Below, one piece after another: positions 1 through 59,249 of a stretch of DNA of 64,000 nt. How positions within the stretch are numbered: position 1 is the first letter of the stretch; each line of letters begins with the position of its first letter. The DNA is taken from assembly GCA_965644315.1 (NCBI GenBank), contig CBFFRQ010000008.1, forward strand, positions 42,927 to 106,926, read 5' to 3'. The position numbers and the translations under genes were made by a program. The DNA is from Caecitellus pseudoparvulus (taxonomy: Eukaryota > Protista > Bigyra: Bicosoecida). Below the pieces are notes generated by a model. It did no database searches. It had not been told where the DNA came from and saw only the letters and a program-made list of their open reading frames with translations.

Positions 1-244
1 TGTACCCGTTGGGCGTGATGGGGGAGTCGTGCGAGAACAGGTTGAAGGCGTACTGGCGCCCCCACATGTCCATGGGCCAGGAATCCACGGCATCACCCCG
101 TGCCCAGGCCTTGGTCTGCTCCTCCAACTCGGCCATGGCTGCCGCGCCGGCGCCAGAAGAGGCCTGGTACGTGGACACGACGGCGCGCTGAATGCCAGCC
201 TCCTTGTGCAAGGGCCACAGCGGCACGGCCATGATGATGGTGGA

Positions 245-275
<31 letters not shown>

Positions 276-801
276 TGCAGGGCGTCGTCGGGGTTCACCT
301 CCGGCACGACAAGGGGCACGTCCGGGTGCAGGCGGAAGGCAGAGGAGTTGTCAATGACCACTGCGCCGGCGTCCACTGCGGCTGGGGCGAACTCCTTGGA
401 ACGCGCACCGCCCGCGCTGAACAGCGCAATGTCCACATCCTTGAAGCTGTCCGCGCCCAGCTCCTCCACAGTGTAGTCTGTGCCCTCGTGGGTGATGGTG
501 CTGCCTGCTGAGCGAGCTGATGCCAGCAGCTTCAGCTGTGCGGCGGCAGGCGTGGTGAAGTGCGGAGGTTCAGGCAGCGAAGGCCGACCAGTTGGGCAGG
601 CGCAGAGGACTGCGGCGCAGGACGCACGTTGCTGAAGGGCACGCCTCGCTGGGACAGCACACGGAGCAGATCCTGCCCCACTGCGCCTGTTGCGCCGGCG
701 ATGGCGATGGAGGGCGCTGCGGCTCCGCCTTTCCAGGCCTTGCCAGACGCAGCAGCTGTGCTGAGGGCACGTCGTGCGCTGGTGGCTGCCGCAGACATCA
801 T
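1..801 (-). CDS. asd: Aspartate-semialdehyde dehydrogenase with mitochondrial-type presequence; exon 1 801-628, intron 627-536, exon 2 535-<1 (3' end outside the window)
   Basis: Spliced translation MMSAAATSARRALS...IAIAGATGAVGQDLLRVL...PFSN|LKLLASARSAG...DIALFSAGG...VIDNSSAFRLHPDVPLVVPEVN...IIANPNCSTII...VSTYQASSGAG...AFNL. Contains the Rossmann GATGAVG and catalytic NPNCST motifs. The 92-nt GTGCGT...CACAG intron restores the frame. Confidence 0.96.
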
Positions 802-934
802 TTTGAAGGCGTGTAGCTTGAAGGGGGAGACGAGGGAGGCGGGGGGCGCTGGCTGCAAAGGTTTAGTTGGTTGAAGGTTGATTGGTATGTGCGGTGGTCA
901 GTGCTCTGCGCGCTGTGTTCTGCCCTGGCATCAG

Positions 935-952
935 AGGAAGTGTGCACTCCCT
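935..952. promoter_or_regulatory. Imperfect palindrome AGGAAGT-GTGC-ACTCCCT in the divergent asd/ectB promoter
   Basis: 12 contiguous bases match the reverse complement of the ectC upstream palindrome; 134 bp from the asd ATG. Confidence 0.6.
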
Positions 953-1185
953 GTGAGCTGGAGGCCCCCCTCGACCACGCCGGAGGCCTGCGCCAAAGCC
1001 CGACCAACTCGCCCACAAACGCCGTCCTGCGTCACTTTCAAACACCCACACGAATCTCCACACCACCCACATTGCTAACCCGAAGTTGCTGCACGCCAGC
1101 AACCCGTACAATCAAAGCATCAGCCCTCTCCCATCACGCTGCCGGCGGGGTGGAACAGTTGAGCAAACTCCGCAGCCACCACACA

Positions 1186-2825
1186 ATGTTGACTTCCGCT
1201 GTCGCCACAGCCGCGCGAAGCGTGCGCCTTTCCACAGCAGCTGCAGCTACCTCTCGAGGTGCTGCAGGCTTGGTGGCGTCCATGAGCACTAACGCCGCAA
1301 ACCTCAAGGTGTGTGCGCCGTCGCCCGGCCGGGCGCCCTCCAGCCAAATTTTGCGCTGCAGGCCACCTGCACCTCGCTCACACCGCCCGCTGGATGCAGA
1401 TGCCTGAGGAGCACGAATCCAACGCACGAGGCTACGTGCGCAAGTTCCCCATGTCCATCGCCAAGGCTTCAGGGGTCACCATCACAGGTGAGGCGGCCGG
1501 CTGCCCAGCACGCGCACGCACTCGCCCCGCCTCACTTCCCCTGCGCCACCCCCACAGATGTCGAGGGCAACGAGTACTTCGACTGCCTGCAGTGCGCTGG
1601 CACTCTGGCCCTGGGGCACAACCACCCCGTGGCAGTGGAGGCCGCCAAGTCCTTCCTGGACAGCGGCTCCCCCATGCAGGTGCTGGACCTGAACTCGCCC
1701 TACAAGAACGCCTTCATGAAGGAGCTGCTGGGGCTGCTGCCTGACAACCTGACCCGCCTGCACTTCGCCTCCCCTGCCGGCACGGACTGCTTGGATGCCG
1801 CCGTGAAGCTGTGCAAGGTGGCCACTGGCCGCCGCGCCGTCGTCTCCTTCCACGGCGGCTACCACGGCATGGGGCAGAGCACCATGGCCATGATGGGCAA
1901 CCTGAACACCAAGTCCAACGTGCCGGGGCTGATGGGGGACACCTACTTCCTGCCCTTCCCCTACCAGTACCGCCAGCCCTTCGGCATCAAGGACCCCGAG
2001 GAGGCTGACGCGGCTGTCATGGCGTACATCGAGACCGCCCTGCGCGATGACGAGTCGGGCATTCCCAAGCCCGCCTGCGTGGTGGTGGAGGCCATCCAGG
2101 GCGAGGGCGGCGTGCAGCCCATGTCCCCGTGGGCTATGCGCGAGCTGCGCCGCATCACCAAGGAGCAAGACATCCCCCTCGTCATCGATGAGGTGCAGGC
2201 GGGCTTCTGCCGCTCCGGCCGTGTCTTCGCCTTCCAGCACTCCGACGAGGGCCCAGAGGTGTCCGCGCCCATCGCCTCTGATGCCAAGTACGGCGGCATC
2301 AAGCCCGACGTCGTGTGCATGAGCAAGGCTGTGGGCGGCGGCATGCCCCAGGCAGTGGTGGCGTTCTCCGAGGAGCTGAACAAGTGGGCGCCCGCTGCCC
2401 ACACCGGCACTTTCCGCGGGAACCAGATCTCCTTCGCCACCGGCACAGCCACCCTGCAGTACATGCAGGAGCACAAGCTGTGGGAGAAGGCGGAGCGCCA
2501 GGGCGAGTGGCTGCAGAAGCGCTTGAACGAGCTGGCAGAGGAGACCGGCATCATCGGCGACGTGCGTGGGCGTGGGCTCATGGTGGGCGCAGAGTTGGTG
2601 CGCAAGGATGCGACGGACCACAACGGCGTGCCCATGCCAGACGGCGAGGCGGCCGCGGCGGTGCAGGCACACGCCTTCAAGGAGAAGAAGCTGATCATCG
2701 AGAAGGGCGGCCGCCACGGCGGCGTGCTGCGTTTCCTGCCCCCCCTCACCGTCACTGACGAGGAGTTGGAGCGCTGCGTGGACATGTTCAGCGACAGCGT
2801 CCGAGCAGTGGCTGCCTCTAGGTAA
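1186..2825 (+). CDS. ectB: Diaminobutyrate--2-oxoglutarate transaminase (EctB/Dat, class-III PLP aminotransferase) with mitochondrial-type presequence; exons 1186-1308, 1400-1487, 1558-2825 (~492 aa)
   Basis: Motifs ESNARGYVRKFP, DCLQCAGTLALGHNHP, FHGGYHGM, VEAIQGEGG, DEVQAGFCRSG, PDVVCMSKAVGGG (PLP Lys), HTGTFRGNQ, GDVRGRGLM. Two GT-AG introns restore the frame. An alternative first intron 1313-1361 is also frame-compatible. Adjacent to ectC. Confidence 0.92.
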
Positions 2826-2874
2826 ATGCATGTTCAACAGGGAGGCAAGCAGACTAGCGCATGCATTGGGGGGC

Positions 2875-3569
2875 CTACTTGCCCTCGAAGCCGACTGGCA
2901 CGCTGCGGGTGCCGTTCACCAGGCTAGCCGGCGGCTTGATGAGCTTCTCAGACACCGTCGCGCCGTCCATGGTGAAGTGCGCCGCGCCCTCGTCGTCCAC
3001 GGCAGGGTACACGCCGTCGGCGTTGTGGTCCTCAGTCCCCGCCACAGGCGGGTTGAAGGCGCACACAACGACGATGTCCCCCTTCGTGGCGCGCAGGTAG
3101 TGCCGCTCCTGGCCGTCCAGCCCGTACATGGTGCCGGGAGCCAGCTTGTGCACGATGCCCTCGCCTTCCTTTTGGTCGGGGCCCACCAGCTCGATTTCGC
3201 CTTCACCGTGCGTGATGAACACGGCCTCTACGTGGTTCTGGTACCAGATGAGGGTGCTGGTGCCTTCCTTCACAATGGTCCTGCACAGCGGGGTGCAAGG
3301 CGTCGGCACAAGGTGACACTACTTGCTCCGACTTTCCTGCCCGAATTCCGCACTCACCTGTGCATGCTGAACCCCATGCCGTCCTTGCGGGTCAAGTACC
3401 GCTGGGACTGCCATGTGCCCGTTGCTGCGTCCTTCACTCCGCCAGCTGCCTGCACGTCCTCAAAGGTGCGGATGATGAAGGTGCGGCTGGCCGCCGGCGT
3501 GGCGGCGCGCACGGCAGCCCTGGCTGCTCCCGCGACTCGGCTGCGCACGGCAGTGGCTGCAGACAACAT
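2875..3569 (-). CDS. ectC: L-ectoine synthase (cupin) with mitochondrial-type presequence; exons 3569-3358, 3280-2875 (~205 aa)
   Basis: FIIRTFEDV...WQSQRYLTRKDGMGFSMHR|TIVKEGT...IWYQNHVEAVFITHGEGEIE...PGTMYGLDGQERHYLRA...VCAFNPPVAGTEDHNADGVYP matches the EctC signatures, with the Glu/Tyr/His iron ligands present. 77-nt GTGAGT...TGCAG intron. Confidence 0.96.
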
Positions 3570-3704
3570 GATGGGCAGAGGGGTGTGTGTATAAAGTCAG
3601 TGGAGAAGGGAGGGTGTGAAAGGTGGGCGGTGGTTTTGCGGTGAAAGTGATGTGGCCGGGGAACACCGACTTGCGACACGCAGAAGCTGTAGACTCCGTC
3701 GGCG

Positions 3705-3726
3705 TGGTGAAGTGCACACTTCACCA
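3705..3726. promoter_or_regulatory. Perfect inverted repeat TGGTGAAGTG-CA-CACTTCACCA upstream of ectC
   Basis: 10-bp arms with a 2-bp spacer, about 138 bp upstream of the ectC ATG. The 18-bp core recurs upstream of ask. Confidence 0.72.
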
Positions 3727-3815
3727 GCGACAGCTGAGCACGCACAGCCGCGGCGACACAATGATTGCATTATCAGGCAGCAGCCGCAATTACACTAGCA
3801 GTCGGAAATGGGGTT

Positions 3816-5590
3816 TCAAGCCACCATCTCATCGTGCAGTGCAGAGAGAGCTGCCTTTGTGTCAGGCGTCGGCACAACGACGCAAAGGTTGTGCTTGGAG
3901 TTGGACACGACGGGGGGCACGTACGCCTTGATGCCCTGGTCGGAGAGGCGAGACAGCACTGCCTCGCGAGTGGTGGCCTCGTCCACCTCGTCGCCCACCA
4001 GCACCAGCATAGCGGCGTCCTCCACTGCGCGCACGCCCGTCTGGCTTGCCAGCTCCGCCTCGTCCAGTCGCATGGAGGACGAGCGCTGCAGCACCGTGGG
4101 CAGGGCGGCCTTGGTGATGCTGGTGACGGGGCCAGAGGTGGTGCCGGCATCCGTGATCAGTGTGCCGGGCAGCTCGGGGCGCAGGGTGTTCTTGACGACA
4201 ACGGGGATGCCGCGCTGCTGCGCGGGCAGCATGGTGGCGGGGTGCAGCACCTTCTTGCCGAACTGCACCAACTCATGGGCTTCGTTGTAAGAGAGGCGGG
4301 GAATGGTGGTGTCCACATCTGCATCGTGCACGACGCCTGTGAACCCGTCCTCCCAGTCCGCCATCATGCCGTCTTCGCCCTTGACGCACTCCACCTTCCA
4401 CACGACAACTGCTGCGTTGCCCTCCGTGCGTGCCAGGAGAGAAGCCAGGGTGCTGGCGGTCAGGTCGCTGCCGCCACGGCCAAAGGTGCACACGCTGCCA
4501 TCTGTGGCCTCAGGGTGGCCCCCGAAGAAGCCAGTGACGCAAGGCACGCCGCGGCCGTCCAGGATGGGGTGCAGCACGTTCTGGGCCATGTCGCGGGACG
4601 CGGCCAGATCGGGCTTGGCATCTGTGTGCACGCCGTCCGTCACGATGACGCGGTCGGCAGGGACGTACTCAGAGGGCACTCCCAGCATGCGCAGCGTGCC
4701 ACTCATCACCTGGTTGCTCATGCGCTCGCCAGCTGTGACGATGCCGTCTGAAACACGCCCCTCCAGCTTGCCGGCTTCGGCGGCTTCCAGGTACAGCCGC
4801 CACGTCGCGCCCATGGTGTCGTGCAAGTGGGTCATGCTGGTCTGCAGCTCAGTGGCAGAGCCAGCCATGAGCTCGCCTGTGGAGGGGGAGGGACAGCGTG
4901 CCGTGCCGCGTGCAAGTGGTACGTGTTTACATGCCGGCGGAAAGGGCGGGTATTGAGGAGCGCGCAGGAAAAAGTTCCGCTCCGCTCAAAGCCCGGCGGG
5001 GGGCAGGGTAGAGCACGCACCGATGACGCCCTCGTGCCAGTGCAGGAGGCGGTCATGAGTCTCTTTCAGCTTCTTCATGTCCCCTGCTTCTGCAGCTTGG
5101 CTGCACTGGATGAGGCGGTCTGTGCAGAGGCAGGCGGAACGAGGCGTGTTGGCAAAGTCGGATCAAGCGTTCGGAACGCTGCCAACCACACACCAGTCAC
5201 ACCGTAGAACGCGGAGAGCACGCCGACAGTCCTGAGAAAACGGATAGGGACAAGCTATGAATAGTTGAGCTTGGTTTGGGCGGATTTGTTTCACAGATCA
5301 GCGCCGCGAAGGCGCCAGCCTGCACGTTCGACTCTGCACACGCACCTTGAGCCGGCATCCCGGTATGCCTTGAGAAGCCGCCCAACGTTGCGCACAGCAG
5401 GCGCGTTGCCCACAGACGAGCCGCCGAACTTCATGACAACTGCGTCCAGCTTGCCCTCTGTTGCAGGCACGGCCGCCTGCTCAGGCGTTGGGGCGGTCCA
5501 TGCTGTTGCAAGGGGTCGTCCGCTGGACACGGCTCGGGAGCCAAATTGGTGTGCCACACGGGCAGCGGTGCGAGATGCGGAGGTCAACAT
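3816..5590 (-). CDS. ask: Aspartate kinase with mitochondrial-type presequence; exons 5590-5346, 5231-5194, 5119-5021, 4876-3816 (~480 aa)
   Basis: VVMKFGGSSVG, VGVLSAFYGVTD, DGIVTAGERMS, VTGFFG...TFGRGGSDLTAS, LSYNEAHELVQFGKKVLHPATMLPA, VKNTLRPELPGTLI. Three canonical introns give a continuous 481-codon frame. Confidence 0.94.
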
Positions 5591-5734: not shown

Positions 5735-5752
5735 GTGAAGTCCACACTTCAC
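5735..5752. promoter_or_regulatory. Palindrome GTGAAGT-CCAC-ACTTCAC upstream of ask
   Basis: 17/18 identical to the ectC element at 3707-3724; 145 bp upstream of the ask ATG. Confidence 0.72.
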
Positions 5753-5832: not shown

Positions 5833-8800
5833 GATGGGCAGTGCAACCCCTGCACTCGTGGATGTGCTGGCAGGGCGCATTTTGACAGGTGCCTCTGCAG
5901 TCCCACCATTCGCCACCCTGGATTTGAACCAGACGAAGCAGGCACGGCACTGCAGGCAACCTGACGTCCTTGAAGGGGTGAAGTAGCCGCCAGCCTGATA
6001 TGGACTTCTTGCACAATGCGGGGGCTGGGGCACCTGCCTCCGCCACAGCGTTTGCATCGGTGCGGAGGCTTGTGGGCGAAAGAGGCGATTTCCGCAGCGC
6101 ATGCTTTCCCCCGCGCCACCCCACCCTGCCTACAGGACTTTGCCCGCGTAGCCAGTGTGCCTGATGGAGCTGAAGGTCACAAGGCTCCGGAGGCAGCAGT
6201 GCTGCACGCACTGTCTCGGGGCAGCACGGCGGCCAGCACACCCGCGCTGCTCTCCGACAAGGACGCCTGCTCCGCCACCAGCAAGGCTCTAGCAGGCTGC
6301 GTCAAGATGCTGTTCCCCTACTTCGTGGACACAGCCAAGGCCGGCACATTGCAGCTGCTGCAGGCCATCCTTAGCGGCGCAGCGGCTGGTGCAGGCGGCG
6401 TCATTGCCGCACTCCTGCGCCAGCTCCCCGGTGAGTCCACGCCCAGCTCTGGCGCCAGCGTTGACGCACGCCCCCCTCCCTTCCATGACGGCGCCCCTCC
6501 CCTGTGCCACCGCAGTCGGCAGCGCGACCTGTGCCTCCATTCCCTGGTTCCTGCAGCTGACGGACCTGCTCCTGGGACCTGCCGCTGGCTGGCTGGCGGG
6601 CAACGGAAACATGCACGCGCTCTGTGCTGTGGCTGCTCTCGCCATCGCGCGTGTGCTGGGCGAGGCTGGCGTGGCCCTGCCACCACACTCCACGCCCAAG
6701 GCAGACATGGCACCTGCTGCAGCTGCGCTGCGCAACTGCGAGCGCATTGTGGCCGCTGCCGCGGCGGGGCAGGGCGTCGCCCTGCGCAAGGCAGGCGCTG
6801 AGCTGCTGCGCCTGGCGTCAGCGGCTGCACCCCACCTGCCCTCCGCTGCGGCGCTGTGGGACACCCTCAGTGCAGATGGCGTGGCGGGCCATGCCCTGCT
6901 GCCTGTGCGCGTACACCGCACCCTCATGAACTGCCGTGTGCCGCCTGAGGTGGAGCAGGGCACCAATCACTTGCTGGCCAAATGCCCCGCCAAGGCTGGC
7001 TCCACGCAGAGTACCATGCTGGCCGAGTGGCGGGAGACGCTGCGGCGGTGTGCGTGGGGTGGCGCGCCTCTCACGCCCTGCCTCGTGGCGCTGGCGAGGT
7101 ACATCCTGACCGTCATTCGCCCCTCCGCCGCCCAGATCCGCTCTCCCTTCCTGCAGCGCTGGCAGCTCCTGCCAGAGTTGTGGCAAGCAGCGCCATCGCC
7201 GGATGGAGGGCGGGAGGTGCTGCAGGCACTGCTGTGGGACTGGGCCACCTTCAATGACGATGCCAGGATCATGCAGGTGGAGCCCGTGGCACTGGCAGTG
7301 GGGGCGGCATCCGCCAGCTCTGAAGCACCAGCGCCTGGGCCACGAGCTGGCCCAGACGCTGCCACCGCCATCTTGCAGTGCCTTGCGGACATGGTGTCAC
7401 AGCCAGGCTGCTTTCAAGGGGCAGAGCCGGCGGTGGTCGCCTCTGGCGTGGCGTCGGCCCTGGGCTCGTGCGTTTCCCTGCGTGTGCTGCCAGGCCTGCA
7501 GGCTTGGGTACCAGCCCTGGAACAGGCGCCTGAACACGCTGCTCGCTTGCGGGAGGCGCTGCCAGACACGCTGGGTGGAGTTGTGGCAGCCCCTGTGACA
7601 CGGATGAAGCGCACCAGGGACGGCGAACCCGTGACTCCCTCGAGCACTCCCCACTCTTCCGGCACCCCCTCCTCGCCCGATTCAGAGCTGGGACCAGGCT
7701 CTCCACACACCACCGCAACCCCTGTCGCGGACACAGTGGCTTCCTGGGGCTCCAGTGTCTTGAGCACGCTGCAGGGCGCGGCGGTGCTGTCCACGGGGGC
7801 CACCCACACAAGCTCTGAGGAGCTGGTGCTGCCCATGGCCACGGCCTGCTCTGGCCACGTCTTGGTGGAGGCCCTCACACCTGCTCTGACCAGCATTCTT
7901 GAGGGTGGTGGCGATGACGCCCCAGCCACCCTGCCCCAGCGCGTCCGAGCCGTCGCTGAGCCGCTGGCTGAGGCGGTCGGGCCGTGGGTGTGGGACGCGG
8001 TGGGCGTGGGAGCCCTTCTCGCCTCCACCACCACCTCTTCCTCCACCACCCTCACTGCCCTGCACACAGAGACACTGCCCAAGGCTGCCCTCCTCCTCCT
8101 CGCGCTTGTGGACACCCTGCTCCACTCCAAGGCGGGCTCATCTGGGGCCGAGGGAGGGGGCGGGGGGGACACACACCCCCTCGCCCAGACAGCAGCTGCA
8201 CTGCTGCACGCAGTGGACGGCTTGGCAACGCTAGACCAAGTCATGCCGCACTTCCAGGAGGCTGAGGAGGGGGAGCACACGAGCAACGGCGGGGTGGTGG
8301 CCCTGCTATGCCTGGGCGCCGCCACCATCCCTGCCCACAGGCCCGCTGCGCCCACCATGCTGGCCCTGGCTGCTCAGGGCGACCTGGCCGAGTGGCTGGA
8401 GTCTGCTGCAGGGGCTGCCGACGCGCTGGACGTCGTGGGGGAGCTGGGCGGCGGCACCCCCCGCATTGCCGAGTGGTTCACGGAGGTTGCGCTGCCCACT
8501 CTGCTCCCGGCAGACCTGCTGACAGCCGACCCCCCCAGTCCCCTCACCTGCGCCGTCGCTGGGCGTGGTTGGTGGCTCACGCACGTCGCCATGCACACTA
8601 GTGCCTGGCGGCTGCCCCAGCTCACCCACCCATCCGCGCCAGCCCCCGGCAAGTCCACCCCCCTCCCGCTCCTGGCGCTGTCCCTACTGCACTGCCCCGC
8701 CGCCCTAGACACTGCCAGCCTCAGCGCCGCAACAAATGCCCTCGTGGGCGCCTTGAGTCCCTCCAGTGGGCACGCCTTGGGGCAGTTGCCCGGCCCCGCT

Positions 8801-8953
8801 GCCTTCAACCTTCTCCTGCGGTGGTTGCTGCTGCTGAAGGGGCTAGGAGTGCCTGCTGAAGCTTGGGCCGGCATCACGCAGCTGGCACAGGGGTCGGAGG
8901 AGACACCTGCAGCGGTGGCAGCTGCTTCCTTGTCCACCATGGGCCTGCTGTAG
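5833..8953 (+). CDS. INTS3: Integrator complex subunit 3 (SOSS-A)-like protein; intron-containing, start uncertain
   Basis: LMNCRVPPEVE...LARYILTVIRPSAAQIRSPFLQRWQLL...LQALLWDWATFNDDARIMQVEPVAL resembles the INTS3 core (LIRYIC..HPS.E...PRW...LALFYDWLFF...IMNIEP). The upstream exon ends GVIAALLRQLPG at a GTGAGT donor near 6430. Confidence 0.75.
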
Positions 8954-8967
8954 GGCAGCCAATGCAT

Positions 8968-10863
8968 TCATGCCACCTCCACGCCCAGCTCCAGCGCCAG
9001 TGCCTCCGCGTCAACCCTCGCATACCCGTCCTCTGCCGTACCCACCGGCGCCCTGCCCAGCTCCTGCAACACCTCCTGCAGGGCCTGCTTGGCACCTGCA
9101 CGATCAGAAGTCGCAAGGCGGGCCTTCGCCAGCCAGTACCCATTCAGAGGCCACACACGCCGTGTGAGCAGGGCACGGCAGGGCTCCCCTGCGCTTTGCT
9201 CCCACTGCGTATCGCCCAGCACGCGCTGTCCGAAACGCAGCACGCTGCCCAGGTCACGCAGTGGAGGGGGCGCGTCAGCTGCCCGGGACAGCCACCCCAG
9301 TGCCTCGGCGGCGGTGGCTTCAGGCAGGGCGCCGTACAGAGCCGCCGCGCCGCTGCGCTCCACCCAGCTGAGGCTTGCCAGAGCATGAGCCCACCGGCCC
9401 AGCATGTGGTAGGCCTCTGGGTCCCGAGGGGGGGAACTTGGCACCGCCATGCCGGGCGTCCAGACCTCTTCCCCCCCCGCCTGGATGGCATCCACCAGGT
9501 GCTGCTTAAAACGCGGCGCGAACTGCACCACCGCCCCCTGCCCGTCCAACGTCGCCAACTGGTTCCCAATCAGCGCCGCCATCTTGTGCCCCAGCGCATG
9601 GCGCCCCGCAGCACTGGCCAGCGCAGCGTCCGCAGCCACTTGTCCCCGTGTCAGCCACTCAGTCGCCTGCACTGGCCCCAGCTCCACCGCCTCCGCGCCT
9701 GGAACAGGCGGGCACTCGCCCTCAGGCACCGGCCCGATCCAGCTACAAGCCAACAGTGCAGCCACATCTGCATCACCCATGCCTCGAGGTGTGTGCTGTA
9801 GCAGTGGCGTGGCCAGTGCAGCTCCCAGCAGGGCAGGCGGCACCGGCGACGCGACAGAGTCTCGCGGCACGCCCCACTTGGTCAGCTCAGCGCCATCACA
9901 CACCACCCTGCGGAAGCACACGCGCGCCAGTGCTGCATGCAGGTCCGCGATGCCAGGAGCTGCGGGGTCCAGCACACGCAGCGCCACCTCACACGCCTGA
10001 CGTGCCTCGCCTGCGTGGTTGGCCGCCCCCAGCACATCCACCACCTGCACCGCCTCCATCACTCGCACGCTTTGAATCGGGGCCCCTGCAGCTGCCCCAC
10101 CTCCCCCTTCAGCACTCGGCGCCGTCACCCGCGATGCGTCAGGCGAGGGGCTCCGTGGGGGGCTGCTTGTGGTGGTGGCCTGGGCGGCGGGCGCCGCCTC
10201 CACGCCACTCGCTCCAACGCCCGAGAGTGCCTCTTCCGGGGTACTCGGGACAGCGGCAAGGCGGTTCGCGTCAGAGTCTGTACTTTCCACGCAAGGGGTG
10301 CCTCGCGGCCCTGTTGGGCGGTGTGTGAACAGAGCCCTGGCCGCGCTAAGAGCGCCCACGCCGCTCACAGACAGCACGACGGTGGCCAGAACCAGGCAGG
10401 CATTGCGCGGCAGGGCCACAGAGAATTTGACTGTGCCGCCCACTTCTGTGCTCAAGGCTTCGTAGCCCACGAAGGAGCTCATCAACGCCAGCCCTCCGAG
10501 CATGAGCACGGCAAACGCTGCGTCTGGCGCCAGCCCGACGACTTGCTCGCCAGCACCAGCGCCTGGCGTGTGGGGGCCGCTGGATCCCCGGGAGCAGCAG
10601 GACACGCCCGACTGGAAGTGCACATCAGGGCATATGATGCAGCCACTGCGCTTGGAAAAGGTGGGCCCTTGAGGCATGGGCTGCGGAGCGGATGAAGCCT
10701 CGGCAGCTGGCGTGGTGGCAGCAGATTCCGCACTCTCGAAGGCCACAATGCGAGCCTGCAAGGACTGGATGCGCTGCTGCACAGCGGAGTTCAGAGCTTC
10801 CAGCTCGTCAAATGAAGTCTCATCTTCAAAGTCTGCAGTCACCCCTTTTGTTGGGGAAGCCAT
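8968..10863 (-). CDS. Regulator of microtubule dynamics (RMDN/PTPIP51)-like TPR protein with N-terminal coiled coil and hydrophobic segments
   Basis: HALGHKMAALIG...FKQHLVDAI...DPEAYHMLGRWAHALASLSWVERSGAAALYGALPEATAAEALGWLSRA matches the RMD1-family C-terminal region. First ATG at 10863. Confidence 0.72.
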   Translation of the reverse strand: MASPTKGVTADFEDETSFDELEALNSAVQQRIQSLQARIVAFESAESAATTPAAEASSAPQPMPQGPTFSKRSGCIICPDVHFQSGVSCCSRGSSGPHTPGAGAGEQVVGLAPDAAFAVLMLGGLALMSSFVGYEALSTEVGGTVKFSVALPRNACLVLATVVLSVSGVGALSAARALFTHRPTGPRGTPCVESTDSDANRLAAVPSTPEEALSGVGASGVEAAPAAQATTTSSPPRSPSPDASRVTAPSAEGGGGAAAGAPIQSVRVMEAVQVVDVLGAANHAGEARQACEVALRVLDPAAPGIADLHAALARVCFRRVVCDGAELTKWGVPRDSVASPVPPALLGAALATPLLQHTPRGMGDADVAALLACSWIGPVPEGECPPVPGAEAVELGPVQATEWLTRGQVAADAALASAAGRHALGHKMAALIGNQLATLDGQGAVVQFAPRFKQHLVDAIQAGGEEVWTPGMAVPSSPPRDPEAYHMLGRWAHALASLSWVERSGAAALYGALPEATAAEALGWLSRAADAPPPLRDLGSVLRFGQRVLGDTQWEQSAGEPCRALLTRRVWPLNGYWLAKARLATSDRAGAKQALQEVLQELGRAPVGTAEDGYARVDAEALALELGVEVA

Positions 10864-11271
10864 CGCGGGTGCCCCTCGTCGAATGGCGAACGAAGCACCC
10901 TCAGCTCGCAGCAATGCCCCAACTACTGCTCAGCTGATGAAAACTGAGGACAGCAACGACCCTCTCCGAATTGAATATTCCAAAGAATTCCTTCGCGGTG
11001 CACTATGCAAGCACATGTTGATTGTTGCTGCCTCAAGCAGTCTGTGCCGCGGTGGCAAATTCTCCTCATCATCACACGCTGACTTCCTGCCAACCTCCTC
11101 AAATCTAACCAATCTGCTGCAAGCCCATCGATGTGAGTGGACCTCGGCCAACCTAGTTGGCACGTGATGAGCGCCTTGCCCGCCGGCAGCTGCAGCGCAC
11201 CGCCACGTCGCCTCCAACAACGCTCAACGCAGGCTCAAGCTCATCAGAACCCTTTCACTGCGCCTGTCCAC

Positions 11272-12036
11272 ATGGCGACTGCACATACACCGACAGGGAT
11301 CGGCGCGCAGCTGAAGCCTTTTGGCAGCATCATGACAGCGAAGGAGTTTCGAGACCAGCGCAACGCGCGTGCGGCTGCTGCACTGCAGCAGCCGACGAGC
11401 ACGCTGCAAAGCACGACTGGCGCGCACAAAACCAAGCCTCAGACCTCAGGAACAGTAGGAGGAGTGCATCGAGTTGGCGCCAACCTTCCGACCAGCCACT
11501 GTCTTGTAAGCGCCCTGGGTAAAGCCAAGGCTGGCTTTGCAACGCAGCAAGTCAACGCAAACGCCGTTGCCACGCTGCGGATGCAAGACGTGCAACCCGC
11601 TGCGACAGAGGGGCGACAGCACTCCCTCTTGCAAGACATGGACGAAATGTCACCTTCCTCACCGTCAACTCCGTCGGGCAGTCTGGGGACAGAGTCCCAG
11701 CCCACACCCGACACTGTGCTAGCTCACGGCACGCCTCAAACCAACTGCACTGCAGCAAGCGGGGAGGTACCTGCCGCTGAGCTCGCTACCAGTCCCGTGT
11801 CCGTCGCAGCCTCCTCTGCGGACTTGGCCCGCAGCATGGGCCTGGTGTCCCCGATCACCAATCGCCTGCAGTTCAACTCTCCTCGCACGCAGCACGTTGC
11901 CCAAATGCGGCTGGCGCGCGCCCGCACAGCCCCGAACCCAACTCTCAAACACGAGCCCGTGCGAGCACCAGCATCATCCTTCAAGCGCTGGTTCCTGTGG
12001 CTGCCCTGCTGCAGCCGCCGTAGAAAGGAAAACTAA
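11272..12036 (+). CDS. Hypothetical low-complexity protein with C-terminal WFLWLPCC plus basic tail (possible palmitoylation anchor)
   Basis: Open frame from ATG 11272. The stop overlaps the AATGCATT element seen at other gene ends. Confidence 0.5.
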   Translation: MATAHTPTGIGAQLKPFGSIMTAKEFRDQRNARAAAALQQPTSTLQSTTGAHKTKPQTSGTVGGVHRVGANLPTSHCLVSALGKAKAGFATQQVNANAVATLRMQDVQPAATEGRQHSLLQDMDEMSPSSPSTPSGSLGTESQPTPDTVLAHGTPQTNCTAASGEVPAAELATSPVSVAASSADLARSMGLVSPITNRLQFNSPRTQHVAQMRLARARTAPNPTLKHEPVRAPASSFKRWFLWLPCCSRRRKEN

Positions 12037-12081
12037 TGCATTGCAGACTCCAGGCATACGGTGAGCGCAGCGTCACAGCCC

Positions 12082-46700: not shown

Positions 46701-49700
46701 ACCTTCTACACGACGGATACAACCTCTTTGTCCACGCTGAACTCGGTAGGCACCGTGCAGCTGTCTGAGCCTGCCAGCTCCATATCATGTGGCGACCATC
46801 ACGCTTGTGCAGTGCTGGCCAGCGGGTCTGTGCAATGCTGGGGCGCTGGCGGGTATTCGACGACCTTGCGGGCCAGGCTTGGACAGCCGGGCTTGACCAG
46901 CAGTCACATTGGAGACAACGAGACACCAGCCTCCCTCGGCCCTGTGCAGCTGTCTGGACCTGCTGTCGCGGTGGAAGCGGGCCCCATCCAATCCTGTGCA
47001 GTGCTCGCTACAGGCCATTTGCAGTGCTGGGGCCGGAACTTCAAGGGAGAGCTCTTCTACGGCCACACCGACACCGTCGGCGCCACCATCACACCGCATC
47101 AGGCTGGGCTCTCCCCACTGCCCCCCACAGTGCAGCAGGTGGCCGCTGGCTACGAGGCCACCTGCGTCCTGCTGCATGGCGGGCACATTCGGTGTGTCGG
47201 TGACAATTCTCAGGGCCTGCTGGGCTCGGGCTTCCCGGGCATCGTGGGCCAACATGGACTGCCTCGCTACATGCTCAACCCATCCCCACAAGTGCTAGAC
47301 CTGGGGCAGCATGTGGCCATTTCCTCCCTGCTGCCTGGTCTCCGCGCCCTGGGCAGTGTCATGCAGTGGGCCAGCATTGCCCAGGTACGCTCATGCCCCT
47401 CCTGCCCCATGAAGGACGTGGAGTCCCTCCCACCCTGGCTCATGAGCGTCATGCGTGGGGCCGAGTTCATCGACATGCTGCCCCCTGCCGCCTCCACCGG
47501 CATTCTGTGCCGGCAGCGCGGCATGCCGACGCGCTCTGGAGTGGACCTGTGTGCACCTTACCAAGCCTGCAGTCGTGACTTGGATGCATCTGCTGAGCTG
47601 CAGCCCTTCGCTGAGACGTGTGTGTGGCCCGAAGACTGGTCCATGGCCACCATCCTCCAAGTGACTGCCGTGACTGACCAGGCTGCACAAGGCAAGCCTG
47701 CAGTGTCGCCTGCCGCGGGGGGCCTGCAGGTGAAGCTGGTGGGGCGCTTCTGGCCCCTCACCATTCTCCGTCGCGAAGCCGTGCCGTTCACTGTCTTGAT
47801 AGGTGCCGCGCCCTGCACAGCCCCTCAGCTGGCGTCCGTGTCAGAGCTGACGTGCATCACGCCTCCACTGCCGAGCACAAACCTCACCTCCGGCGCTGCC
47901 ATCCGCATCGAGCACAGCGTCCCCAATGTCCCCAGCCCTGTGCGGAGTCCGCCTGATGTGGTGGTGCAGTATGCGCCGCCGCTGCTGAGCTTCGTGCAGC
48001 CAGCCCAGGATCTCCCCGTCACGGGCGCAGACGTGACTGTGCGTGGCGCGCACCTCGGCCAGACGCTGTCCAGCACGGCCAGTGTGCCTTGGCTCTTGCC
48101 GCTGGCTGCTGTGCACGTTGCTGTGCTGGAGCACCCCCTCGATGCGGCTCCAGCATCCCGCTGCAACGTGACGTCAGTGTCAGTGGCGTCCATTCAGTGC
48201 ACCATGCCGCCTGGCCTGGGCACGGTGTGGCTGCGTGTCACTGTGGCTGGGCAAACTGCCCTAGACATGCTACAGGTGTCATACGCGGCGCCCCTCGTCA
48301 CTTCAGTGGCGCCTGCCACTCTCCTGTGGTCCCCACCTGCCAACGCCAGCCAGGCGTCGCTCCACATCCACGGGTCAGCTCTGGGACTGCGAGCCCAGGA
48401 CTTGGACGTGACTGTCGCTGGCGCACCCTGTGGACAGATCTTGTGGCATGACAGCACCCACATCGAGTGTGCTGCCGTGAACACCAGTGCCGTGGACACA
48501 TCGGCTTCATCGGGAGATGTCATGCTTCGTGTGCTGTCCACTGGCCACGAGACAAGCCTGTCGGCAGCAGTGCGTGTCTTCGGACCCATGCGCGTCACAG
48601 GCGCAGCTCCATTGACTGTCCCATGGGGAGGCGGCGCCATGACTGTGTTTGGGCTGGAGTTTGGCCTGCTGGGAGTTGGGGGAAGCATCGACGCAGTGAC
48701 CATGAACGGCGTGCCCTGCACCGGAGTTGTGGTGTCGGCATCTTCTCTCTCGTGCTCCCTGCCGCCAGGAGTCGGTGGACTGTCCCCCATCGTTGTGCGG
48801 CGTGCCGCCGGCGCCGAGGCCCAGTTTGTCAGTGCGTCCTTGGCGTATGACACGCCCCGTCTCAGCCACACACAGCCCAGCGTCTTGTCTGCAGCGTTGC
48901 CTGGAGCTCAAGGCACCACCACTCTGACTGTGCACGGCCAAGGCTTCGGCCAGCCGGGTGCTTGCCCGGTGCAAGCAACGGTTGGATCACAGACGTGCGT
49001 CGTGCAGCATGTGTCCAACACCACGCTCCTGTGCACGGGCCTGAATGCGACGGCACTGCTCGCCGTAGCAAGTGCAACGGTGCAAGTAACTGTGGCTGGG
49101 CGCCCCTGCCCGTCGCCGTTAAACCTGCGCGTGCTGCAGAAGCCATCTGTGGCGGCCATGCAACCGTCGGTCGTGACGGCTGCGGGAGGCACGGAGGTGA
49201 CGCTGCTGGGTGTGGACTTCGGGGGGGGGGCTCTTTCCGATGTGCAGGAGGTGCTGATTGGTGCCGCCACCTGTGCCATCCTGCAGGTGAGCTCCACCAG
49301 CATCCGTTGCAGGACACCTTCCAAGCAAGTCGCTGGCGGGAGCCCTGTGGCGGCCACTGTGCGCCTTGCCTCTGGCTTCCAGGACACTCTGCCCAATGCC
49401 CTGATCTACACTGAAGCAGAGATCTTCCGCGTCGAAGGGGGCACCCTCATGCCTGCCGCTCGCCTGGGGGTCGCCACAGCGACACTCAGCGCTTTTGGCC
49501 TGGCCTTGGGTGCACCGGGCATGGCCAGTCCTGGCAATGTGTCCATCGCGGGTGTCGACTGTGCTGCGGCAGGTGGTGTTGCCAGCCTTGCTGCCAATGC
49601 CCGCAGTGTGACGTGTGACGGACTCGACCCTGGCTTCCTGCCACAGCAACAGGCTGGCTCAGCCACGACTGTGCAGCTGGTCGTAACGACCAATGAAGGC

Positions 49701-52478
49701 CTGCAGCTGACTGCACCTGCTGGCACGGTGCAGCTCCTGGGGCCACCACAAGTGGAAGCGCTGGTCCCGCCGCAGGTGCGTGCAGGGGAAGCCGTCGCTG
49801 TGCTCGGGCGCAACTTCGGCCTGCACCGTGGCGACGTTCAGGAGGTGCTGGTCGGCAGCATACCCGTGCCAGACGAGGCGTGGGAGTGGAACAGCCAGGG
49901 CAGCATCAGCATCACGGCTGTGCCCGAACCTGCCACCTTGGTCCTGTCCAGCCTCGTAGATCTGCCAGTGGTGCTGCGCCTGGCCAACGGCCACAGTGCA
50001 GTGTCCACCTCCCCAGCTGTCTTGACGTACGACGTGCCGCCCTCTGCCCCCCGCAACGCACCAGGCGAGCCCTGCCTGTACCGCGAGGGGCCAGGCGGCA
50101 ACATCAGGGCAAGCTTCCTGTGGGAAGATGACACTGCCACTCGACTTTCGCCTGTTGCGGCATGGATCGTGCATGTGTCTGTGCAGCCCTGGATGGAGGG
50201 CGGGCGGTACACCCAGCGAGTCGTGCCGACATCAGGCGAGTCGGTGGGCGACGTGCTGGTGTCGGACGCAGGGATTGGGCCGTGCAGTCACTTGCGAGTG
50301 GATGGGAGGAGCTCATCCACTCGTGTCATTGACTTGCGCATTCTGGAGTCGCCTCAACGCCCCGTGTGGGTGCGTGTCAGTGCGGCAACAGGCGTGGCAG
50401 ACCCTGCCCTGCGCGGCCCGCCCAGTGCTGTGGGTGGGCCAGTCTTCCCCCAGTGCCTGCCAGCGCAGTACATTGCCACTCAGCACGCGAGGCAGGGGCG
50501 GTGGGGTGGCGCCGTGTGCCTTGCCTGTCCCGATGGCGCCGTGTGTGGGGGCCTGCCGTGGGAAGGCATGCGGGCGGCTGCAGGCTACTACAGGGTGCCC
50601 TGGAGCGAGCATGGCCTGACGTTCCAGCGGTGCACAGACCCGACACTGTGCCCGCCAGCGGTCAATGTGCGCTTGACTGCGCAGCAGCTGGCGTATGTGC
50701 GCCCCCAATGGAACGTGACACGCCCCAACTCCACGTCAGAAGGGCAGCACCCCGGTCTGCCGGCAGCTTTCCAGGCCCAGCAGCTGGACATCCAAGCACC
50801 TGCCGAGGACGGCTTCACTGTGCAGCAGGGCGACGCATCGAACTCCTCCGCTGCAGAGCTGGCCGTGGCCTCGAACTGTGTTGCTGGGCACACTGGCCCC
50901 ATGTGCAGCAAGTGCGCTGTGGGGTATGGGCGCCTGGGCACGCCCCAGTGTGCGCCGTGTGAGGGTGGGTCCAGTCGCTCCATCGGGCTGATTTTCGTCT
51001 TCTTCGTACTCATGGTGGCGGTGGTGGTGTGGCTGGTGCGGGGTCAAGTGCGGACTCGTGGCTTGAGCAAAAAAGCGCACAGTGTTGCCAAGAAAGTCCT
51101 CGTCACGCACATACAGCAGACTGCCCTCATGATGTCCTTTGACCTGGAGTGGCCAGACCCCTTCAAGACTCTGCTTGCTGTGTCTGACACAGCTGCTGCC
51201 AGCAGCGCACAAATCGCATCCCTGGACTGCGTGCGCTCCAAGGAGGTGCCCAACGCGCCCAGCTCCTCCTTCCGCATGCAGGTTCTCCTCACAGTGGCCG
51301 CCCCTGCCATCATCCTCTCCGTATGCCTCCTGGGTGCTTTCGGGCTGGCTGCGCTGAAGTCTCGCCCCGACTGGGCTGAGGCTCGCCGCCGCGTCATTGT
51401 CGCCGTCCTGGTCGTGGCGTTCTTGTTTTACACGCCTCTCACTCGCACAGTCATGCAGCTGTTTACATGTGTGAGTGTGGGCGGGGAGCAGCGCCTGCTG
51501 AATGACTTGGAGGTGCTGTGTGACTCGTCTGGAAACTTGGCGTGGGTGTATGGCTTGGGCGTGCCGCTGCTCGTGGTGTTCGTCGCTGGCATGCCAGCGG
51601 CCATTGCCCACACCCTGTACAGTCGACGCACTCGTCTGCAAGACTCATCATGGCACCGCCGCACATTCGGCCTCATGTACTTGGGCTACAAGCCGCAGTA
51701 CTACTGGTACGAGGTGGTCATCATGGCCCGCAAGGCCCTGTTCGCCATGGTGCTCGTGGCGCTGCGCCCCATCGGGCTCCTGTGGCAAATGGCATTCGGC
51801 ATGCTCGTGCTGTCTGCAGCCTGCATCGCCTCTGCCACCTGGGCGCCCTTCATCAACCCCACCTTCAACTCCCTCGACTTGGCATCCTTGGCGCTGTCCA
51901 TGACCACACTGGCAGGCGGCGCCATTCTGTACCAGGGCGCAGTGGAGCAGCGCAGAGCAGACGCAGTCGGTGGCTCGCCGCCGTGGCCTCACTACAGTGT
52001 TGCAGGCCAGACTGTGACTGTGCTGCTCACCTTGGCCAATATCATCTTCGTCGTGGGCATGGTGGCTTGGATGGTGCGCTCCTTCTACAACGAGGAGATC
52101 TCCCCCCGCCTCAGCGTCGCCAAAGCCAAGCACAAAGAGGGCATCTTGAAGGCGTCTCGGCTGCATCAAAAGCTTGCCAAGGTCAGCAAGCTCTCTGACA
52201 AGCCCAAGAGCTCCGTGCTGGGGAAGGCTGGAGCTGTGCAGTCCCCAGATGCTGCGACTGTTGGGCAGGGTGCCAAGCATGCACCTGTCAGCGCTCCGGA
52301 CACGCCAGTTGCTGAATCATCACAAACAGGCATGGCCCAATCCCCTGTGGTTGCTCGTGGACGCGCACCCCAGGAGAAGACAGCCGTTGCAGCCGTTGCA
52401 GGAAGGTCAGTGTTGACGCCTGGCAGCCGTGCTGCACGTGTGCGAGCGAACTTGGCTGGGCCGCAATCGAGAAAGTAA
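43707..52478 (+). CDS. Giant RCC1-TIG-multiTM putative receptor, copy 3 (full length)
   Basis: Same length as copy 2 (offset 12054). Uninterrupted frame. Confidence 0.9.
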   Translation: MGGPTGHPALVPAQAARQPRLRQCRPLQRLALPCVIALCFALLPIGRGVINETFPQALQRQLRFQSYEPIPASAWSAGVAGDTLALSTKARIGASSHSTEHDATLLVEAAHVSVHEELLRWDFNISVNGSLPLAGNASSAAMPHVSFWAVGTMVDLFVQDHAPMPWANRSTWRNASATIPLRAEGSSTVHEVTLQGPANLFVIFKLVWTQGYPEPRVACHTVHRWHHWAWQRVDGARLCSGLVWGHPVLPSHITPAPTPAHPRAWTPGTHHLRAVLHAPVQDALLPFHMAAALQHPQDDPVHLEIRGLQMHSLRALPEGPAAVSWSVQAWSAGQRVHDPGSGPPHPPRVELVPVTLSTKMVSIGDTHACAITGPHAGVKCFGAGGNKLNFFAGKGRLGYGGIDNVGVEKTLKDVPFVQLPRPARHIRAGQLATCATLNNGTLYCWGEGGTGILGHGGGHDVGDDPGETPLSSGPVPVVGRVTMTAIGEQHACALLDTGHVRCWGSGLGGRTGYASQSPILDASTAGIVRLSDLAVSIDSMWGFTCALLVSADVQCWGTGSFEPLAGGAGWLGLGYLTDVGDNEHPADVGPVPLGGKVLDMSVGMFHACALMLSGGVRCWGANDESFQFSGGLSFPLSGRLGIGSTASMGDDEPASASPIIQLPWEVTSICSSFWNNCVTTVSGQSMCWGGEDYGEAGVGRQKYPESVTEKRSIGDDEVPWMQGWMQNGAPVSFMSCGTASQFIGLQGGGIRYIGALGEGRSATGKLRIADTRRYEAHQVILTPQALHAKLAAVSVLRLAAPEFTDTASIHIGDTVACALTRWKGVRCWGQNVWLRLGREEPSTHVGRVSLGQRSTALLLPGPVEELSVGSDHSCARLQDTTVRCWGNNWDYQGGTGHWYLSAASSTPIALGGTPVAIAAGRSHSCAVLSSGQVQCWGRNLYGERFHPNSYVSSSGQPANAIAPARQVCAGFHLTCLLLDDGRVQCVGYTYWGIQGTGSTFYTTDTTSLSTLNSVGTVQLSEPASSISCGDHHACAVLASGSVQCWGAGGYSTTLRARLGQPGLTSSHIGDNETPASLGPVQLSGPAVAVEAGPIQSCAVLATGHLQCWGRNFKGELFYGHTDTVGATITPHQAGLSPLPPTVQQVAAGYEATCVLLHGGHIRCVGDNSQGLLGSGFPGIVGQHGLPRYMLNPSPQVLDLGQHVAISSLLPGLRALGSVMQWASIAQVRSCPSCPMKDVESLPPWLMSVMRGAEFIDMLPPAASTGILCRQRGMPTRSGVDLCAPYQACSRDLDASAELQPFAETCVWPEDWSMATILQVTAVTDQAAQGKPAVSPAAGGLQVKLVGRFWPLTILRREAVPFTVLIGAAPCTAPQLASVSELTCITPPLPSTNLTSGAAIRIEHSVPNVPSPVRSPPDVVVQYAPPLLSFVQPAQDLPVTGADVTVRGAHLGQTLSSTASVPWLLPLAAVHVAVLEHPLDAAPASRCNVTSVSVASIQCTMPPGLGTVWLRVTVAGQTALDMLQVSYAAPLVTSVAPATLLWSPPANASQASLHIHGSALGLRAQDLDVTVAGAPCGQILWHDSTHIECAAVNTSAVDTSASSGDVMLRVLSTGHETSLSAAVRVFGPMRVTGAAPLTVPWGGGAMTVFGLEFGLLGVGGSIDAVTMNGVPCTGVVVSASSLSCSLPPGVGGLSPIVVRRAAGAEAQFVSASLAYDTPRLSHTQPSVLSAALPGAQGTTTLTVHGQGFGQPGACPVQATVGSQTCVVQHVSNTTLLCTGLNATALLAVASATVQVTVAGRPCPSPLNLRVLQKPSVAAMQPSVVTAAGGTEVTLLGVDFGGGALSDVQEVLIGAATCAILQVSSTSIRCRTPSKQVAGGSPVAATVRLASGFQDTLPNALIYTEAEIFRVEGGTLMPAARLGVATATLSAFGLALGAPGMASPGNVSIAGVDCAAAGGVASLAANARSVTCDGLDPGFLPQQQAGSATTVQLVVTTNEGLQLTAPAGTVQLLGPPQVEALVPPQVRAGEAVAVLGRNFGLHRGDVQEVLVGSIPVPDEAWEWNSQGSISITAVPEPATLVLSSLVDLPVVLRLANGHSAVSTSPAVLTYDVPPSAPRNAPGEPCLYREGPGGNIRASFLWEDDTATRLSPVAAWIVHVSVQPWMEGGRYTQRVVPTSGESVGDVLVSDAGIGPCSHLRVDGRSSSTRVIDLRILESPQRPVWVRVSAATGVADPALRGPPSAVGGPVFPQCLPAQYIATQHARQGRWGGAVCLACPDGAVCGGLPWEGMRAAAGYYRVPWSEHGLTFQRCTDPTLCPPAVNVRLTAQQLAYVRPQWNVTRPNSTSEGQHPGLPAAFQAQQLDIQAPAEDGFTVQQGDASNSSAAELAVASNCVAGHTGPMCSKCAVGYGRLGTPQCAPCEGGSSRSIGLIFVFFVLMVAVVVWLVRGQVRTRGLSKKAHSVAKKVLVTHIQQTALMMSFDLEWPDPFKTLLAVSDTAAASSAQIASLDCVRSKEVPNAPSSSFRMQVLLTVAAPAIILSVCLLGAFGLAALKSRPDWAEARRRVIVAVLVVAFLFYTPLTRTVMQLFTCVSVGGEQRLLNDLEVLCDSSGNLAWVYGLGVPLLVVFVAGMPAAIAHTLYSRRTRLQDSSWHRRTFGLMYLGYKPQYYWYEVVIMARKALFAMVLVALRPIGLLWQMAFGMLVLSAACIASATWAPFINPTFNSLDLASLALSMTTLAGGAILYQGAVEQRRADAVGGSPPWPHYSVAGQTVTVLLTLANIIFVVGMVAWMVRSFYNEEISPRLSVAKAKHKEGILKASRLHQKLAKVSKLSDKPKSSVLGKAGAVQSPDAATVGQGAKHAPVSAPDTPVAESSQTGMAQSPVVARGRAPQEKTAVAAVAGRSVLTPGSRAARVRANLAGPQSRK

Positions 52479-59030: not shown

Positions 59031-59249
59031 GCGAGGTTGTTGGGTGTGCTGGCAACCCTGCTCAAATTCCGCGCTCAATCAAAGCCCGTGGCTGCACTCG
59101 CGACAGGCCCGCAAAATGAACACCTCACAAATTAAAATTTCTGCCATTGAATGCATGGGCAAGTTTTGATTTGCCCCTGCCCCTTTTCTGCCGTGTGCAG
59201 ACTTGTGAGCGTGCAGCATCACCTTTGCATTGCGGCGCCTTCCGTTGCA

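Follow-up and report, generated by a model that had tools for sequence, protein, structure and literature searches.

An intron-containing ectoine gene cluster in Caecitellus pseudoparvulus, probably assembled from parts of different origin and kept linked through reshuffling

The closest described system is the ectoine gene cluster of the protist Halocafeteria seosinensis, in which ectB, ask, ectA and ectC lie together in that order with asd three genes downstream (Harding et al. 2016, PMC4987115). All genes of that cluster contain introns and carry predicted mitochondrial signals, four separate mRNAs are formed, a bifunctional Ask is encoded elsewhere in the genome, the asd gene has no close relationship to bacterial sequences, and Cafeteria ectABC transcripts were also listed (PMC4987115). 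In reviews, the kinase was named ask_ect and the cluster was treated as a transferred operon (PMC5924519, PMC5796728). Here, we analysed a 64,000-nucleotide stretch of DNA from the bicosoecid Caecitellus pseudoparvulus (the window; G000:C8:42927-106926 of a 30.6-Mb eukaryotic assembly), which contains asd, ectB, ectC and ask; plain coordinates below are window positions. The evidence supports a real ectoine gene cluster in the nuclear genome, which contains introns, has Ask and Asd paralogues of its own and is not transcribed as an operon. We consider it likely that the cluster was built in an ancestor from parts of mixed origin and was then kept linked while it was shuffled. Clustering, introns, presequences and a nearby asd are already published for Halocafeteria (PMC4987115); what is added here is comparative, namely clustering that is conserved yet shuffled, components of mixed origin, a kinase that is probably deregulated, and a promoter motif as candidate cis-element. 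In the searched literature, which did not extend to most subscription journals, neither the cluster in other protist genomes nor the Dat-type transaminase, the loss of ACT1 or the promoter motif was found described.

Family scans were run per exon, and exons were joined only to check the reading frame. The scans and gene models gave the adjoining order asd(-) ectB(+) ectC(-) ask(-), as the initial annotation had it, and the exon-wise matches (asd, class III aminotransferase, ectoine synthase and aspartate kinase) agreed with all four gene identities proposed there. The divergent asd and ectB genes are separated by 384 bp, the convergent ectB and ectC genes by 49 bp, and the ask stop and ectC start by 246 bp, which leaves no space for a further gene between the four. 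Introns were present in each gene, one in asd, two in ectB, one in ectC and three in ask within the window; all seven were 70-144 nt long with GT..AG borders, and each spliced model had an open frame through to its stop. The genes, together with ectA and the INTS3 flank, are as follows.

Positions 1-801, minus strand: asd, aspartate-semialdehyde dehydrogenase of the asd_B/PRK14874 type, 364 amino acids, with GATGAVG and NPNCST motifs; exon 1 at 801-628, intron at 627-536, exon 2 from 535 across the window edge.
C8:42467-42790 (outside the window), minus strand: last exon of asd, after a second intron.
Positions 1186-2825, plus strand: ectB-like 2,4-diaminobutyrate (DABA) transaminase of the Dat type, 492 amino acids; exons 1186-1308, 1400-1487 and 1558-2825.
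Positions 2875-3569, minus strand: ectC, ectoine synthase, 205 amino acids; exons 3569-3358 and 3280-2875.
Positions 3816-5590, minus strand: ask, class I aspartate kinase without ACT1, 480 amino acids; exons 5590-5346, 5231-5194, 5119-5021 and 4876-3816.
Positions 6389-8953, plus strand: main exon of INTS3 (Ints3_N PF10189, E 3.9e-12), a eukaryotic flank outside the pathway.
G000:C8:35714-36601 (outside the window, 5.9 kb to the left of asd), plus strand: ectA, 249 amino acids, two introns.

The cluster is thus larger than the four genes first recognised in the window. The EctA exons matched TIGR02406 and EctA structures and nothing else; scored exon by exon, they gave 79 and 27 bits on TIGR02406 (cut-off 120.6). 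An HSF-type gene and a kinesin gene, both on the minus strand, lie between ectA and asd, and all five pathway genes span about 12.8 kb. INTS3, reported earlier as the flank of the cluster, was found on the right side only. A contig (L008, Logan, SRR18354362) was 99-100% identical to the transaminase exons and lacked both ectB introns, as expected from spliced mRNA; L008 is transcript-like and agrees, for ectB, with splicing of the predicted introns.

As in Halocafeteria, ectA, ectB, ectC and ask are linked on one nuclear contig with asd near, the genes have introns and presequence-like N-termini, and a second, bifunctional Ask/diaminopimelate (DAP)-decarboxylase is encoded away from the cluster. 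In contrast to Halocafeteria, the GC content is about 65% rather than 46.8% (bioRxiv 10.64898/2026.06.25.734631), asd adjoins the other genes, ectA is displaced behind two unrelated genes, ectD was not found (a weak negative), and a promoter palindrome, unreported there, is present. The bacterial ectABC(D)-ask_ect operon of Sphingobium sp. TKS has the same chemistry, homologous EctA and EctC, and a linked dedicated aspartate kinase. Unlike that operon, the Caecitellus cluster is not polycistronic, has genes on mixed strands, introns and presequences, and includes asd; moreover, its transaminase fails TIGR02407, its kinase is not Ask_Ect, and there is no MarR/EctR among its genes.

Full-length tests of the transaminase used the database protein P0122, and the TIGR02407 score is that of a 460-amino-acid transcript-derived protein. 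The transaminase scored 473.8 bits on TIGR00709, above the cut-off of 401.6, and 318 bits on the EctB model TIGR02407, below the cut-off of 552.2. Control EctB proteins, taken from the operons that hold the closest bacterial EctC, scored 677 and 704 bits on TIGR02407. The label ectB therefore stands for the DABA transaminase of the cluster and not for a canonical EctB. The lysine that binds pyridoxal phosphate (PLP) lies in SKAVGGG, with K295 invariant. Identity reached 46-49% with Dat-type enzymes; with operon EctB, the EctB that neighbours the closest bacterial EctC among them, it was 31-33%. In maximum-likelihood trees (quick trees, with EctB sampled by four sequences), the eukaryotic transaminase clade sat among Dat-type enzymes, and its nesting in Firmicute EctB or in alphaproteobacterial EctB was rejected by the approximately unbiased (AU) test (p 0.0003 and 0.0001, respectively). 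Among Dat, PvdH and RhbA (TIGR00709, PRK06938, PRK06931), which were the best-scoring families and occupy the same region of the tree, the enzyme differs in scoring below the PRK06938 and PRK06931 cut-offs, in having a presequence, and in being linked or fused to EctA and EctC. Three proteins (P0020, P0032 and P0034) have EctA joined to the N-terminus of a Dat-type transaminase, and in members of the same clade the fused EctA parts scored 128.3 and 121.0 on TIGR02406 (cut-off 120.6). Because clade members are fused to true EctA, a role of this clade in ectoine synthesis is supported; the fusion is absent from those listed in PMC4987115.

The cluster kinase has a class I aspartate kinase fold (Foldseek E 4e-24 against class I kinases) and the motifs KFGG, GER and GRGGSD, which carry the equivalents of K8, E119, R198 and D202. 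On the Ask_Ect model (PRK09181), exon 4 scored 40.9 bits compared to 702 bits for the Sphingobium Ask_Ect, and in the tree the cluster Ask fell in a separate, well-supported clade apart from Ask_Ect. Judged by score and phylogeny, the earlier label ask holds for the enzyme class, but not in the sense of Ask_Ect. Throughout the clade, about 55-60 amino acids of the regulatory region are missing, and an AlphaFold model (confidence, pLDDT, 94.4) comprised the kinase domain and one split ACT that corresponds to ACT2. Compared with M. jannaschii AK (3C1M) and E. coli AKIII (2J0W), the fold and the catalytic K/E/R/D are kept, but there is one ACT instead of two, ACT1 being deleted, and the TDV..ADP motif is replaced. 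The lysine site of class I kinases lies at the dimer interface formed by ACT1 (PMC4142519), which makes feedback resistance a reasonable consequence of ACT1 loss; the cluster Ask is probably feedback-resistant. Elsewhere in the genome, the bifunctional Ask/DAP-decarboxylase is found on C67 and a second Asd, of the asd_EA type, on C64 (G000:C64 about 49190-50710; L135:404-1929). With these second copies in the genome, Ask and Asd of the cluster count as additional paralogues, which bears out the earlier proposal that the cluster includes its own precursor-supply enzymes.

The clustering recurred in Cafeteria and in four metagenomic eukaryote lineages. The orders were as follows.

Caecitellus pseudoparvulus: ectA+ HSF- kinesin- asd- ectB+ ectC- ask- INTS3+.
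Sister lineage (L009, L041): asd- ectB+ (RCC1-like) ectC- ask- P450 INTS3+; ectA was not found in 7.4 kb to the left of asd.
Cafeteria (L005-L007): asd+ amino-acid transporter- ectC- ectA- ectB+; ask was not found within 10 kb of ectB.
L043: ectB- ectA+ ectC+ asd-.
L012: ectD- then ectB+ ask-, plus an ectC-ectA fusion.
L136: ectB- ask+ ectA- ectC+, the published Halocafeteria order; 44% GC.

Linkage was therefore kept in six lineages with five gene orders. The Caecitellus proteins were 56-69% identical to those of C. burkhardae, and the gene order was different. In L012, the EctC-EctA fusion (10640-12055) is in frame and the cluster's ectD, with a full signature, lies about 3.7 kb from ectB. 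L136 has a Dat-type transaminase and an Ask of the same clade as the Caecitellus cluster, and its EctC was 78-94% identical to a eukaryotic protein from a transcriptome shotgun assembly (prefix GECG), which we take to be from Halocafeteria. An ectC intron position is common to Cafeteria, L043 and L136, which indicates one old acquisition. In L010 the transaminase occurs alone, unclustered, and two metagenome scans found no further eukaryotic loci. The amino-acid transporter (PF01490) between asd and ectC in Cafeteria (L005-L007:5200-7114) is a candidate carrier of ectoine or a precursor.

Substrate residues and iron ligands have been defined on P. lautus EctC (PMC6344544). In the Caecitellus EctC, the iron ligands E57, Y84 and H92 are kept, as are W21, S23, R25, T40, Y52 and F106, and both altered cupin motifs are present; N38 is replaced by H, a change common in bacterial EctC. 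By these residues, the catalytic core is intact, and the cluster is predicted to direct ectoine synthesis. Close bacterial relatives exist for both EctA and EctC, and the best named relatives of EctB and EctC were Cafeteria and Bicosoecida sp. ms1. Family and protein searches did not find ectD in this genome, a weak negative since both were run without a positive control.

All five N-termini were rich in Ala, Ser, Thr and Arg and had no acidic residues in the first 36-60 positions, and each could form an amphipathic helix with a helical hydrophobic moment of 0.53-0.75. For the four genes of the window, three to five R/K fell within the first 30 residues, and D/E were missing from the first 36-43. 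Such composition together with an amphipathic helix is in keeping with mitochondrial presequences. The N-terminal extensions noted earlier are thus of mitochondrial type in their composition, and the five enzymes are predicted to be located in the mitochondrion.

A 14-bp motif, GAAGTGTG(C/G)ACT(T/C)C, was found upstream of three of the genes.

Positions 937-950, plus strand: motif copy GAAGTGTGCACTCC between the divergent asd and ectB genes, 136 bp upstream of the asd start codon.
Positions 3706-3725: near-perfect palindrome around GAAGTGCACACTTC (3709-3722), with 10-bp arms and a 2-bp spacer; it lies 140 bp upstream of the ectC start codon.
Positions 5737-5750: third motif copy GAAGTCCACACTTC between ask and INTS3, 147 bp upstream of the ask start codon.

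The motif had four exact matches in the genome, three being those in the asd, ectC and ask promoters and the fourth lying within an open reading frame (ORF). In a test that corrects for post hoc choice of the motif, none of 1000 null sets was as good as the motif set. The motif is probably a species-level cis-element, and the palindrome probably co-regulates asd, ectC and ask. A wider regulon was not supported, as all 16 other GAAGT-N4-ACTTC sites overlapped open frames of at least 150 codons. A role of the HSF-type DNA-binding gene (G000:C8:36636-39200; L002:3136-5700; minus strand) as the cluster regulator was likewise unsupported: the genome has about five HSF loci, of which this is one, and the 7.4 kb to the left of the sister-species asd contained none. 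Separately, a 10-mer, GTGGTCAGTG, is common to the asd/ectB intergenic regions here (window 888-900) and in the sister lineage (L009:9020-9036), and may be an older element.

An assembly artefact, or bacterial contamination fused to a eukaryotic contig, can practically be dismissed. Every pathway gene has spliceosomal introns, the sister species has an equal asd-ectB-ectC-ask-INTS3 order, and a scaffold from a separate metagenome (L013) matched window positions -7331 to 12000 at 98.5% in a single block that spans the ask/INTS3 and asd/kinesin joins and both flanks. This match refutes an artefact and rules out the chimeric ask/INTS3 join that the initial annotation had raised as a danger. A single transferred bacterial ectABC-ask operon, later rearranged and given introns and presequences, is the reading given in published work (PMC4987115, PMC5796728), and the close bacterial relatives of EctA and EctC are in its favour; moreover, the eukaryotic genes form single clades that, with the common ectC intron position, fit one early acquisition, and a sister relation of the transaminase to EctB was not rejected by the AU test. 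Such an operon is nevertheless an unlikely source of the cluster, given that the transaminase is closer to Dat-type enzymes (46-49%) than to operon EctB (31-33%), the kinase falls outside Ask_Ect, the asd of Halocafeteria is not close to bacterial sequences (PMC4987115), and no gene order is common to the lineages. Synteny and enzyme types favour a cluster that was rebuilt and then shuffled over an operon relic. They thereby support the earlier statement that this is not a transcribed operon relic and, between the two histories it had allowed, rebuilding or retention after rearrangement, point to rebuilding followed by shuffling.

A different question is whether osmolyte ectoine is the main product. 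In bacteria, Dat-type transaminases belong to diaminopropane and siderophore pathways, and one bacterial Dat-type gene adjoins a second PLP-enzyme gene and not ect genes. These points count for genes that are real but have another main product, either DABA or N-acetyl-DABA, or else ectoine put to another use such as nitrogen storage or stress protection, as do the failure to find ectD here (weak negatives, no positive control) and the lack of salt induction of Halocafeteria ectA and ectC (PMC4987115). We regard this as improbable, more so than the operon relic, because the catalytic core of EctC is intact, an EctA accompanies it, and relatives have EctA fused to the transaminase or EctC fused to EctA.

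Several observations weigh against a rebuilt, co-regulated and mitochondrial ectoine cluster. The eukaryotic transaminase clade as sister to all bacterial EctB was not rejected (AU p 0.155 and 0.457). Throughout the Ask clade (at least 18 sequences), KVE..W..G[FW].GVVHDAD is found instead of TDVDGV..ADP at the nucleotide site (window 4300-4420, exon 4), and this altered motif makes the activity of Ask less than certain. The likely start of the second Asd is presequence-like too, so that the paralogues are not divided by compartment alone. The ectA promoter lacks the palindromic motif, as do the sister species L009, Cafeteria and L012, and the transcript-like evidence of splicing covers ectB alone.

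Other features of the window are ordinary neighbours, namely an RMD1-3-like gene (8968-10914), a SHIPPO-repeat gene (53079-54737) and a gene that encodes a Rubisco-LSMT substrate-binding domain (59151-62690). Between 17500 and 53000, a unit of about 12 kb is present in three head-to-tail copies that are 85-98% alike in sampled blocks. Each copy has a plus-strand ORF of 2944-3012 amino acids, and that of the first copy has RCC1 repeats and TIG domains.

In the explanation that we prefer, a cluster assembled from different parts, five separately transcribed and spliced nuclear genes would give rise to enzymes with presequences, which are probably taken up by the mitochondrion. In that organelle, Ask would phosphorylate aspartate and Asd would reduce the product to the semialdehyde, which the Dat-type PLP transaminase would convert to 2,4-diaminobutyrate. 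EctA would then acetylate 2,4-diaminobutyrate, and the iron cupin EctC would cyclise the acetylated form to ectoine. The cluster Ask, lacking ACT1, would probably escape end-product inhibition and so may have reached the role of the bacterial Ask_Ect by convergence. The palindrome would probably co-regulate asd, ectC and ask, the three genes that have it about 140 bp ahead of their starts. The cluster itself would have been assembled in an ancestor from parts of different origin, with linkage kept and order and orientation shuffled.

A broader proposal, which we put forward only tentatively and hold to be possible rather than likely, is that bicosoecid-type protists composed this pathway from an EctA and an EctC of bacterial origin, a transaminase of the Dat type, a feedback-resistant aspartate kinase without ACT1 and an Asd, relocated it to the mitochondrion and maintained it as a co-regulated cluster through reshuffling, with control by the palindrome in Caecitellus, possibly via the HSF-type factor of the cluster. 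If true, the locus would be a protist counterpart of the metabolic gene clusters of fungi and plants, and the 'stolen operon' account would be corrected. Two questions can now be put to the test: operon transfer or rebuilding, and whether the loss of ACT1 makes a natural feedback-resistant aspartate kinase. With several further lineages, among them Cafeteria, a common grazer in the sea, the one published protist ectoine cluster is no longer a single case, and ectoine production may be widespread among small flagellates that feed on bacteria.

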